A stretch of 54,783 nucleotides of DNA from Octopus bimaculoides (lineage: Eukaryota), in the NCBI RefSeq assembly GCF_001194135.2, contig NC_068998.1, forward strand, positions 49,321,472-49,376,254, read 5' to 3'. The translations under genes and the position numbers were made by a program. Within the stretch, counting starts at the first letter, position 1. Every line of letters begins with the position of its first letter. The notes under the pieces were generated by a model. The model had not been told where the DNA came from. It saw nothing but the letters and a program-made list of their open reading frames with translations, and searched no databases. This document shows positions 22,501 to 54,501 of the stretch, piece by piece.

Positions 22501-22834
22501 ATATGTTATATGTATACTTCAAAGTTCTCCACGTGGTATGTTATATTCTAACGCAACAACAGACGAGATAAATTTCACAATAATAACACTAAGGCACAGT
22601 GATGATATTGAAGCATTTTTGTAGGTTTTGAAACTATTTAAATTATAATCACATTACTAGACTTACAGATTTGATTGTATCGAAGTAATTTTAACATTAA
22701 CAATGTATAAAATATCATTAAAGCCTTTGATCGTACATGTTTAACTATATCTATTACTGTTTTGCCTTTTTTAGATGCTGACCGATGCCCTATTTCTTGC
22801 CCAAGCTCTCTTTACAATCATGATACTTATATAA
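10552..22834 (+). CDS. Unit 2: about 163-aa precursor with signal peptide, Cys-rich head, triplicated KR-containing linker and hydrophobic GPI-like tail
   Basis: Exons with AG/GT borders and consistent phases: 10552-10588 [13 protein letters not shown]; 12701-12788 [29 protein letters not shown]; 15850-15886 [12 protein letters not shown]; 17388-17456 [23 protein letters not shown]; 19315-19377 [21 protein letters not shown]; 20062-20103 [14 protein letters not shown]; 20535-20597 [21 protein letters not shown]; 21931-21963 [11 protein letters not shown]; 22775-22834 [25 protein letters not shown] overlaps/follows the stop. The joined frame is open with 6 Cys. Exon 15850 is the least certain. 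Confidence 0.72.
11550..11730 (-). mobile_element. SINE family A, degenerate
   Basis: gattacatcgac..cgaaaggatgaactgcaaagtcaacc..gtgctaacgattctgtcagcgtgccgcc. Confidence 0.7.
12120..12420 (-). mobile_element. tRNA-derived SINE family C, degenerate
   Basis: gcacttgcccaagataccacgcc..gagcctggaaccctatggctaggaagcaa is a reverse-complemented tRNA-like head. A similar decayed copy lies near 14080-14300. Confidence 0.55.
12810..13005 (-). mobile_element. SINE family A
   Basis: gccagtcgattagatcg..ggtacctaatttatcgaccccgaaaggatgaaatgcaaagtcgacctc..ggttctgccagctcaccgc. Confidence 0.8.
13031..13427 (+). mobile_element. Full-length SINE family B with target-site duplication
   Basis: Same head and body as 5608-5991, with a (caa)n tail. 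TSD ttatcttac at 13022-13030 and 13428-13436. Confidence 0.9.
13465..13680 (+). mobile_element. SINE family A
   Basis: aggcagcgaaatggcagga..aaatgcttag..tttacgttctgagttcaaat..taagtaccag. Confidence 0.75.
14330..14515 (+). mobile_element. Additional SINE-like repeat fragment
   Basis: gctccagttcactaag..gtcctctccaggtgggg..accggccctaatgaatc..gactcgagaag..tttacctttacttta resembles a CORE-type SINE body and tail (recall-based). Confidence 0.4.
18399..18440 (+). pseudogene. Decayed pseudo-exon copy of the 42-nt xxC exon
   Basis: Paralog of 20062-20103 with the donor gtacgt intact. The acceptor is changed from tttgcag to tttttgag, and the phase-0 frame reads RDAKDQ* (TAG). Confidence 0.65.
19867..20001 (+). 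repeat. Three near-perfect 45-bp tandem repeats
   Basis: Unit gtatgtctctcccataatttatctatctattcacatattcatacg x3. It is single-copy in the paralogous segment near 18295-18340. Confidence 0.9.
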
Positions 22835-23009
22835 ATAAATATTGTCCTACAAATGTTACATTTTGAAGTTTTCGTTGTTATTGACCGGTTTCTTATCTCT
22901 GAAAAATAGTAAATCGCTGAAATTCAATCTTATTGTTTTAAAGATGATTCACAATGATACTTATATTGATGTCATAAGACAATGTACATTTTAATATATG
23001 ATTCATACT

Positions 23010-53200: not shown

Positions 53201-54501
53201 AGCGTATTCGACTGAATGCGTACTAGCAATTCTCCAGCCCTCTAATTCAAGTCACGTGGAGGTCACATATAGCCTTAGACTTTTGAGGTCACTAAAACAT
53301 ATCAGTCAAGTACTGGGGTCAATGAAATCGACTTTTACTCCTCTACTAAATATCCTTAGCTTTTACCAGAATTTCAAACAGCTTTAATTTTTACATTTAA
53401 CTCTGGAATGATTGGCGGAGTAAGCAAAAAATGTGTGTAATAGGTTCTTTTCATAAATTCTACTACACAAATTAGCAAGAACACAATGCAACCACGATGA
53501 AGAGAGCAGCGTGCACTACAATGCCCGCCCTCTCATTTGTTCTTATCCAAAGAGTATAGTATTGTATAGTAGTTTTCAATCTTAGTTTAATATTATTGAA
53601 TTCCTGTAAGAACCATGGGAATATACTGATCTTATAATATATTAATGTTTTGAACAGCCTTCGAATTTTTCTACCTAAACAGATTTTAACCGAATATTTA
53701 CACTTTATTATTTGAAGATTTATCTATTTCCACTGTTTAAATAAATCAATAATTTGTGTGTATTCACTATCGAAATATAATTTGTTTCTTTTCAGATGCG
53801 ATCACAAAGCTGTAGTAAGAGAAATCACGTATGTTATTACATTTTCACACTACTACATATATGTACTATTTTGTTACTGTGTTATCCTATCTGAAATTTC
53901 AGGGGAGGAGATTTGTCAATTATACCTGTGCTCAACTAATAGTTGTTTCATCGATTACGAAATTATGAAAGGCAAATTCGACTTCGGAGGAATTTGGACT
54001 CAGAGTGTTAAAACGGACGAAATGCTACCAGAATTTTGCCAACACGACAATTTATCGTAGTAACGTAACATCAATAACACCAGTGCTATTCTGTCTTTGT
54101 ACAGCGGTAATATTAATCTGACAGGACAATATTTTAATGTCTCTAAATACGAACGGTATTATGTATATATATATATATATATATATATATATATATATAT
54201 ATATGTGTGTGTGTGTGTGTGTGTGTGTGTGTGTGTGTGTGTGTGTGTGTGTGTGTGTGTGTATGTATACATGTATGCATATATATACGTACGTATATAT
54301 GAATGTGTGCATATATCTATATTTATATCAATATCTATATCTATCTATCTATCTATCTATCTAGCTATCTATCTATCTATCTATCTATCTGTATGTATTT
54401 GAGTATGTGTTGATAGATTTTTATTTCTTTTCTCTCTACAGATGACGTTTTTCTCAGCGTTCATTTCCGCAAGTGTTCTTAACACGCTGACGAATATTTG
54501 A
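50211..54501 (+). CDS. Unit 5: short (about 71-74 aa) member with signal peptide and 4-Cys head; anchored or secreted depending on donor choice
   Basis: 50211-50256 MQMTSICIFTYLLFDG (donor gtgagt); 50526-50616 VTATVDCNEVARKYCPGTFNKYVKHNNNCR; exon from 53796 CDHKAV.. (donor at 53814 gtaaga or 53828 gtatgt); optional 54105-54155; terminal exon from 54442 (phase 0 MTFFSAFISASVLNTLTNI*, 20 codons then AATAAA as in units 2 and 3). Confidence 0.7.
50930..51050. repeat. (GA)n microsatellite; representative of many further (TA)n, (CA)n, (TATC)n, (TC)n, (AAT)n and (TATG)n tracts
   Basis: Direct reading. Other tracts lie near 15450, 21525, 26090-26360, 42000, 43245, 43450-43850, 51350 and 54160-54390. 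Confidence 0.95.
51790..52200 (+). mobile_element. mariner transposase catalytic-domain remnant
   Basis: LELFWGYK..ENVNAEIHCPQLNE..VLGNGNRMIMQHGSARPCTA*..ITSLGW corresponds to the mariner W..G..tina..Yc.QL..HDNARPHTA..LGW region. Confidence 0.7.
52755..53380. mobile_element. Cluster of degenerate SINE family A copies
   Basis: gaggcagcgagc..gggcgaaatgcttagcggtatttcatccgc..tcgaggtcgattaaataagtac at 52755-52975, with further decayed copies to about 53380 and a minus copy at 53890-54050. Confidence 0.7.

Follow-up and report, generated by a model that had tools for sequence, protein, structure and literature searches.

The GDNF/GAS1 domain proteins (the GFR-alpha receptors and GAS1) carry all-helical, disulfide-rich domains and are held at the membrane by a glycosylphosphatidylinositol (GPI) anchor. 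Ly6/uPAR proteins, ~100 residues long and encoded by genes in tandem clusters, have a signal peptide at one end, a GPI signal at the C-terminus and a single small disulfide-rich domain in between (PMC4839075). The RGM proteins are GPI-anchored as well, and the N-terminal domain of RGMB (RGMB-ND) has been described as a three-helix bundle held by three disulfides (PMC7354924). Here we describe a stretch of Octopus bimaculoides DNA (54,783 bp, 34% G+C, microsatellite-rich and containing 11 runs of N; the whole stretch is called the window below) that contains four tandem paralogous genes: LOC128249838, LOC128249837, LOC128249820 and LOC128249822. A protein search retrieved RefSeq 'uncharacterized protein' models for all four.

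An initial annotation of the window had described five units (u1 to u5), each ending in an exon for a hydrophobic C-terminal peptide. The RefSeq isoforms reduce the five units to four genes, 'u3' and 'u4' being the single gene LOC128249820. The best explanation of these genes, and in our judgment a probable one, is that they encode secreted helical six-Cys mini-proteins with a GPI-attachment signal in the terminal exon, displayed on the cell surface. The signal peptide would take the protein into the endoplasmic reticulum, and the C-terminal hydrophobic peptide would serve as the GPI-attachment signal. GPI transamidase would cleave the part encoded by the linker exon at an omega site of small residues (for example N-G-S in u2 or S-G-S in u3/u4) and add the GPI lipid, leaving the helical domain exposed at the plasma membrane's outer face. 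The gene structures, the frame, the annotated C-terminal position of the tail and the recurrence of the layout in the family are documented below, whereas the GPI processing, the omega positions and any ligand are inferences from them.

Hydrophobic C-termini in an Octopus protein family

Part of the evidence for this explanation comes from the relatives of the four genes. An exhaustive hidden Markov model search of 1.84 billion representative proteins, with a profile built from five RefSeq proteins, returned 38 relatives at E ≤ 1e-3 and 8 at E ≤ 1e-10; the family amounts to at least 38 clusters at 50% identity. We looked up 20 of them, and 19 were from O. bimaculoides or O. vulgaris, most being encoded on the same 55.5-Mb chromosome. 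The remaining one, P0021 (WP_234446203.1), is an 82-residue 'hypothetical protein, partial [Campylobacter fetus]' from a 322-nt contig, which almost certainly entered the bacterial assembly as eukaryotic (cephalopod) contamination. Literature searches retrieved no description of the family, which is unnamed, seen only in Octopus in the databases searched, and tandemly expanded. Most relatives are ~100 residues long and share one layout, and a few contain 2, 4 or ~8 tandem domains.

A C-terminal hydrophobic stretch with at most six trailing residues, and hence no cytosolic tail, was found in 24 of the 39 family proteins scored, and this layout recurs in paralogues less than 35% identical. Where the domain is repeated, as in P0023, P0024 and P0026 (2, 2 and 4 domains), the hydrophobic tail is present solely at the extreme C-terminus. 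Taken together, the tail without a cytosolic part and its restriction to the very end of multi-domain members make a GPI signal the best reading.

We also applied an omega/spacer/tail rule which, although crude, fitted 24 of 43 family proteins, as compared to 2.0 ± 1.4 when the last 40 residues were shuffled. Within the window it fits u1, u2, an alternative end of u3, and u4, with candidate omega triplets SRS (u1), CNG/NGS (u2), SDG/NQG (u3 alternative end) and SGS (u4) and spacers of 9-10 residues; small residues being common, these triplets indicate compatibility only. Many linkers of the family contain a motif S-G-N-(R/T)-V, 8-10 residues ahead of the hydrophobic core. The GPI signal proposed in the initial annotation thus stands as the best-supported reading, given the recurrence of the tail layout and the presence of signal-peptide exons, although u5 escapes the crude rule.

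Four genes with a common exon plan

Each gene comprises a signal-peptide exon, two exons with three Cys each (A and B), phase-0 linker micro-exons and a terminal exon that codes solely for a hydrophobic C-terminus of 16-19 residues. The proteins, made of a small domain, a linker and a tail, accordingly measure ~100-175 residues (105-174 in RefSeq). The signal-peptide exons, recognised as such by inspection, are 37-46 nt long, end in phase 1 and encode hydrophobic peptides of 12-15 residues; those of u2 and u3 are recognisably homologous, including the border TTTCTG/GTAAGTGGCT. Exon A goes from phase 1 to phase 2, its three Cys being arranged as G-V-x4-DC-x3-A-x3-C...C, and exon B, with the pattern CF-x6-C-x2-YF-x-F...C, from phase 2 to phase 0. 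The one to four linker micro-exons per gene are phase 0, polar and rich in Ser, Gly, Asn, Asp and Pro. All have open frames, AG...GT borders and lengths that are multiples of 3 (33, 42, 51, 54, 63 and 69 nt).

Since all micro-exons preserve the phase 0 in which exon B ends, phase-0 entry into the tail exon is forced in the four genes. The reading frame originally assigned to the tails was therefore correct, and it is also the one used in RefSeq: P0005, P0003, P0001/P0002 and P0004 terminate in four of the five tails in that frame. With one base less, the tail exons of u3, u4 and u5 start with TGA and that of u2 reaches it one codon later; with two bases less, the tail exons are open and contain Cys.

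Nucleotide and translated self-comparisons were swamped by microsatellite and transposon matches and merely hinted at the conserved exons, and exons were located by motif and phase-aware scans. The RefSeq exons, whose models are predictions, map exactly to the window, with the sole exception of the u1 signal-peptide exon. The exons are as follows (a slash marks an exon border).

u1, LOC128249838 (108 residues)
1034-1124, + strand: exon A, first three Cys, phase 1 in and 2 out
3371-3458, + strand: exon B, second three Cys, phase 2 in and 0 out
4989-5042, + strand: linker exon, 54 nt, phase 0-0, holding the rule-compatible omega triplet SRS
6370-6426, + strand: terminal exon, 18-residue tail + TAA, moderately hydrophobic; nearest AATAAA/ATTAAA 147 nt downstream

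u2, LOC128249837 (174 residues)
10507-10588, + strand: signal-peptide exon, RefSeq ATG at 10507, ending CTG/GTAAGT in phase 1
12701-12788, + strand: exon A, 28 residues
15982-16069, + strand: exon B, 29 residues, RefSeq donor at 16069
17388-17456, + strand: linker micro-exon, 23 residues, with dibasic KR
20062-20103, + strand: linker micro-exon, 14 residues (42 nt), like the NRCKNQGKVSDGNK exon of u3 in motif, length and position
20535-20597, + strand: linker micro-exon, 21 residues, with an unannotated duplicate at ~19315-19377
21931-21963, + strand: penultimate exon, 33 nt, phase 0-0, candidate omega site C-N-G or N-G-S
22775-22834, + strand: terminal exon, 19-residue tail + TAA; AATAAA from base 2 of the stop

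u3/u4, LOC128249820 (isoforms of 140 and 157 residues)
26639-26675, + strand: signal-peptide exon, MIVFAFIFFLIS(G), ending CTG/GTAAGT in phase 1
30773-30872, + strand: exon A, VATKEDCNALAQKICPHSFDVFSGKSWDQRFC
32846-32933, + strand: exon B, KQKLFFSCFHGKNDRCMKYFSILSYLLCE
33883-33933, + strand: cassette exon, IGMKKGNPLGQPQRRSL, only in RefSeq isoform X1
36237-36278, + strand: linker micro-exon ('SDGN' exon), NRCKNQGKVSDGNK, spliced in RefSeq to 42559 and not to 37433
37433-37492, + strand: internal tail exon, VMPETLSLAPFLVILIILI + TAA overlapped by AATAAA, skipped by both RefSeq isoforms
42559-42621, + strand: linker micro-exon, VGEQKRSPRIHTSNTASKNGR, 63 nt, phase 0-0
43925-43966, + strand: penultimate exon ('u4'), PSDDPPSGSDNRNE, candidate omega site S-G-S
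45255-45305, + strand: RefSeq terminal exon, MMSQTLYFATFLIILL + TAA; nearest AATAAA 85 nt downstream

u5, LOC128249822 (105 residues)
50211-50256, + strand: signal-peptide exon, MQMTSICIFTYLLFD(G), phase 1
50526-50616, + strand: exon A, VTATVDCNEVARKYCPGTFNKYVKHNNNC
52462-52549, + strand: exon B, LFSKFHKCFDGRDRYCSSYFQFHSIHKCA
53796-53828, + strand: penultimate exon, MRSQSCSKRNH, 33 nt, phase 0-0
54442-54501, + strand: terminal exon, MTFFSAFISASVLNTLTNI + TGA; AATAAA from base 3 of the stop; weakly hydrophobic, does not fit the crude GPI rule

The linker exons at 4989-5042, 17388-17456, 20062-20103, 20535-20597, 33883-33933, 42559-42621 and 53796-53828 were absent from the initial annotation. 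The signal-peptide exon of u1 lies either outside the window or in the gap at 546-645, and the RefSeq protein gives it as MMLSLFIFLLVF. The RefSeq start of LOC128249837 places 15 polar residues (MYETSKVSVQHETPL) ahead of the signal peptide; it is probably too far upstream, because all paralogues begin at the equivalent of the ATG at 10552.

As for 'u4', the motif and phase-aware scans detected no separate signal-peptide, A or B exon in the gap-free interval 37600-43924, because in the RefSeq models u4 forms the 3' end of u3. LOC128249820 consequently holds two homologous tail exons (37433 and 45255). The first of them has an intact acceptor, the strongest polypyrimidine tract, a frame that matches the donor at 36278 and the most hydrophobic of the five tails. 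We conclude that the annotation has missed an alternative 3' terminal exon here, or else that the exon is the recent remnant of an event that duplicated the tail exon and its flanks. Used as a terminal exon, it may give rise to a 108-residue isoform ending in VMPETLSLAPFLVILIILI.

None of the 11 N runs overlaps any of the mapped exons. Within the span originally annotated (22775-54501), three are intronic (31026-31156, 33357-33516 and 36446-36996) and three intergenic (24252-24452, 46291-46300 and 49403-49412). The RefSeq proteins match exactly on both sides of the N runs, with the frame kept. Continuity near the 37433 tail exon is less certain, because the gap at 36446-36996 separates it from the SDGN exon (36237-36278). 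The 37433 exon is also flanked by a 260-bp direct repeat, 94.7% identical, with a GT microsatellite (36997-37256 and 38045-38306), the first copy of which starts exactly where that gap ends. This repeat, which a transposon or the assembly process could have produced, affects the trust to be put in the position of the exon.

In u2, an unannotated near-duplicate of the linker exon 20535-20597, complete with an AG acceptor, was observed at 19315-19377, and a decayed copy of the CK exon, with a stop, at ~18407-18450. These extra copies sit in a tandem repeat of ~1.4-1.6 kb (18063-18555 corresponding to 19637-20217, and 19387-19626 to 20737-20976), which is bracketed by gaps at 18576-18851 and 20218-20497. 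The duplication of the linker exon could be real or could be an assembly duplication. The linker exons 17388-17456 and 20535-20597 of u2 and 42559-42621 of u3/u4 have a common motif, V-x-QKRSP-x-(I/L)H, which thus occurs twice in u2 (three times with the unannotated copy) and once in u3/u4. The KR-SP within it could be a convertase site or else a conserved glycosylation or recognition motif.

Other repeats were noted in the window. An inverted repeat of 385 bp (95% identical, with a Cys-rich open reading frame) links an intron of u1 (5607-5991) to one of u2 (13031-13415), and probably represents two copies of a young mobile element. A dispersed repeat of ~120-170 bp, likely a short interspersed element (SINE)-like element, occurs on both strands in introns and intergenic DNA (~3613-3768, 13517-13673, 25636-25752, 37626-37798, 52858-53134 and 53888-54004), and reads ...LRSEFK...PF...YQ..TGVD... 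in the translated self-comparison.

The tail exons and alternative readings

The five tail peptides lie where they had been placed, on the + strand from 6370, 22775, 37433, 45255 and 54442; a polypyrimidine tract and a YAG acceptor immediately precede each of them. The first codon of the tail exon is ATG in four cases and GTG in u3, and the overlap of ATG with TGA is conserved. As originally described, the alignment of the u2-u4 tails is gap-free over 60 nt and the stop, TAA, is codon 20 (17 in u4); small residues come from the preceding exon in u2 and in u4 (33 and 42 nt, phase 0-0). The u2-u4 exons are homologous at the DNA level, but those of u1 and u5 barely align with them, and the exon is no better conserved than its flanks, the u2-u4 homology reaching ~110 nt into the upstream intron and beyond the stop codon. 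The synonymous changes listed in the initial annotation turned out to be a selective sample and do not serve as evidence for selection, as the u2-u4 differences over the 60 aligned nt number 30, 13 and 16 at codon positions 1, 2 and 3, respectively. Position 2, which bears the T of hydrophobic codons, is the least changed, and this fits a constraint on composition and not on sequence, as expected for GPI signals.

An AATAAA right at the stop had been ascribed to the terminal exon in general. It is present in u2, u3 and u5, where it starts inside the stop codon, whereas the closest signal of u1 and u4 lies 85-147 nt downstream. An overlap of this kind has a chance expectation of ~0.007 for each exon, and the u5 case is independent of u2/u3. 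Kyte-Doolittle values for the last 12 residues are 2.4-3.4 for u2, the u3 alternative end and u4, 1.32 for u1 and 1.05 for u5. Set against a null of 156 short open reading frames that follow acceptor-like sites within the window, the u2-u4 tails fall in the top 0.6-2% for hydrophobicity.

Several observations weigh against the GPI-signal explanation. The u1 and u5 tails are moderately and weakly hydrophobic, respectively, with 11% and 22% of the null reading frames scoring at least as high; moreover, there is a Lys in the tail of u1, and that of u5, FFSAFISASVLNTLTNI, does not satisfy the omega/spacer/tail rule. No clear tail was present in 15 of the 39 family proteins scored. In u2-u4, DNA identity is 68-80% in the tail exon and 72-86% in the flanks; given that the exon is no more conserved than the flanking intron, the persistence of the tail in these units alone could reflect recent duplication. 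Finally, the RefSeq gene models on which the exon structures draw are predictions.

Some of these observations would also suit a gene-model artefact, whereby the terminal exon would be mostly 3' untranslated region, or be read in another phase, and the hydrophobic 'peptide' would simply result from T-rich sequence, the genome being AT-rich. Such an artefact would agree with the presence of alternative frames in the tail exons, with substitutions that lack a third-position excess in an exon without extra conservation over its flanks, with the unexceptional u1 and u5 tails, and with coding-sequence ends that are RefSeq predictions. However, phase-0 entry is forced in four genes, and hydrophobic C-termini in 24 of 39 family proteins, most of them less than 35% identical, as opposed to ~2 of 43 shuffled proteins, cannot be explained by the composition of one locus. 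We regard the artefact as very improbable. A different possibility is that the tail is retained, either as an uncleaved C-terminal transmembrane anchor (type I, with practically no cytoplasmic tail) or, in u1 and u5, as an amphipathic membrane helix. The tails of 16-19 residues are predicted to be helical (helix 85-103 in the AlphaFold2 model of u5, at low confidence), those of u1 and u5 are amphipathic rather than strongly hydrophobic, and u5 does not obey the omega rule; for these two units such a retained segment is most plausible. Nevertheless, with 11-15 residues the hydrophobic cores are short for crossing a bilayer stably, no basic stop-transfer residues flank them and no cytosolic residues follow. 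A short core devoid of stop-transfer and cytosolic residues is the classical signature of a GPI signal, not of a transmembrane anchor. In four of the five tails, furthermore, a small-residue triplet occurs 9-11 residues upstream of the core, and we deem a retained anchor unlikely overall.

About equally doubtful, in our view, is a soluble product: the proteins might be secreted or made as precursors from which convertases remove linker and tail at dibasic sites (QKR/SP, CKR/S and SKR/N), which would set free the Cys domain and perhaps short peptides from the linker, or a GPI-anchored form might be shed, as for hemojuvelin. Dibasic pairs do occur between domain and tail in u2 (three KR and one KK), u3/u4 (QKRSP) and u5 (SKRNH), and the duplication of the QKRSP micro-exon suggests a functional module. 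Yet none of these sites is a full furin consensus (R-x-K/R-R), and the hydrophobic C-terminus is kept in paralogues devoid of dibasic sites, a fact that cleavage leaves unexplained. A dibasic pair is found in just 12 of 31 family linkers and is absent from u1, and we consequently rejected convertase shedding as a family-wide mechanism. A GPI signal remains our preferred reading of the tails.

The six-Cys domain and its nearest relatives

Exons A and B together encode a predicted helical domain of ~56 residues. An alignment of 47 such domains contains exactly six invariant Cys, spaced C-x7-C-x13-17-C-x8-C-x6-8-C-x11-12-C. From this alignment, AlphaFold2 produced a confident all-helical domain model (helices 4-11, 13-21, 26-36 and 41-55) with a predicted local distance difference test score (pLDDT) of 89.3. 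An earlier model of full-length u5, based on a 5-sequence alignment, had a pLDDT of 61.8, and its Foldseek matches were noise. A toxin- or defensin-like peptide, as initially envisaged, is at odds with a predicted helical bundle with six Cys, and the lone match in that direction was sub-threshold (one relative to Defensin_big, E = 0.011). Other weak Pfam matches (DUF5332, E = 0.0075-0.011; DUF7707, NPR2, Cofilin and others) were below threshold and inconsistent, and were dismissed as noise.

The Pfam family matched by most relatives (10 of 38) was RGM_N (PF06535). P0026, with its four repeats summed, exceeded the RGM_N gathering score (37.9 vs 24.2 bits) and P0024 reached 22.0 bits; in the window's own proteins, the Pfam search gave no RGM_N match even at E ≤ 10. 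When the family profile was run against the PDB with hmmsearch, the best hits were the N-domains of RGMB, RGMC and RGMA (E = 0.02-0.4; for RGMB, E = 0.023 over 28 columns). The hhalign comparison with an RGM_N profile, itself made of three sequences, returned a probability of 23% (P = 9e-4, 30 columns), with only the core between the third and fifth Cys, FC-x8-C-x7-C, aligning. A Foldseek search of the PDB with the pLDDT 89.3 domain model yielded nothing significant and did not list RGM, and so lends the RGM link no support; short helical bundles score poorly in such comparisons. The nearest known relative thus appears, weakly, to be the RGM N-terminal domain, and we call the octopus domain RGM_N-like, membership being unproven.

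If the tails are GPI signals, the locus is one part of a sizeable set of related cell-surface proteins that are wholly uncharacterised and have to date been seen only in Octopus. Lineage-specific expansions of surface proteins recur in cephalopod genomes. If the family did arise from an RGM_N-like module, this would suggest a link to BMP/GDF signalling. One may go further and speculate, although we think it quite unlikely to be right in full, that Octopus pared the ligand-binding N-module of an RGM-like co-receptor down to a stand-alone GPI mini-protein, which it then multiplied into a tandem family of chromosome scale with 1- to 8-domain members, acting as a diversified set of cell-surface BMP/GDF modulators or recognition tags. 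Alternative 3' ends and convertase cleavage would then switch a given domain between short-tethered, long-tethered and shed forms, the duplicated tail exons (37433 and 45255) and the cassette linker exons with dibasic sites supplying the switch. The expansion of the octopus protocadherins offers a parallel. For the annotation of the locus, the gains are four genes in place of five units, one candidate alternative terminal exon and one duplicate linker exon (both unannotated), and one probably mis-set start codon.

Compared with the RGM N-domains (RGMA, RGMB/DRAGON as well as RGMC/hemojuvelin; PDB 4UHZ, 4UHY and 4UI1), the octopus domain is alike in being small, helical and endowed with six Cys, and the central spacing FC-x8-C-x7-C is identical and aligned. 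The outer spacings differ, with x7 in the octopus domain vs x4 in RGM_N between the first and second Cys, and x11-12 vs x21 between the fifth and sixth. The octopus proteins also lack the von Willebrand type D-like region of the RGMs, with its GDPH autocleavage, as well as RGM_C. Compared with the GFR-alpha domains, which have ~10 Cys, the octopus domain has 6. The label 'GDNF/GAS1 domain-containing protein' that UniRef assigns to P0023 (2 domains) was discarded, as this protein matched zero Pfam families at E ≤ 10, and no GFR-alpha or GAS1 chain (PF02351) was among the PDB hits of the family profile at E ≤ 10. The Ly6/uPAR domains are beta three-finger folds with 8-10 Cys, in contrast to the predicted all-helical octopus domain with 6, and neither a Ly6/uPAR sequence or Pfam match nor a CCxxxxCN motif was found in the octopus proteins by the Pfam search and the Cys alignment.

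Irrespective of fold, Ly6/uPAR proteins such as CD59, Ly6 and the Lynx prototoxins have the same working plan as that proposed for the octopus proteins and are the standard precedent for a GPI-tethered, toxin-sized, Cys-rich peptide. Tethering, which the initial annotation had called unusual for small Cys-rich proteins, is in fact standard in the Ly6/uPAR group (CD59 and the Lynx prototoxins; PMC4839075) and in the RGMs (PMC7354924). GPI-anchored small Cys-rich proteins being a textbook class, the Octopus genes add a new family to it and not a new mechanism. The novelty would reside in the family itself, in a modular exon plan whose anchor signal is a separate, duplicable terminal exon, and possibly in a derivation from the RGM N-domain.

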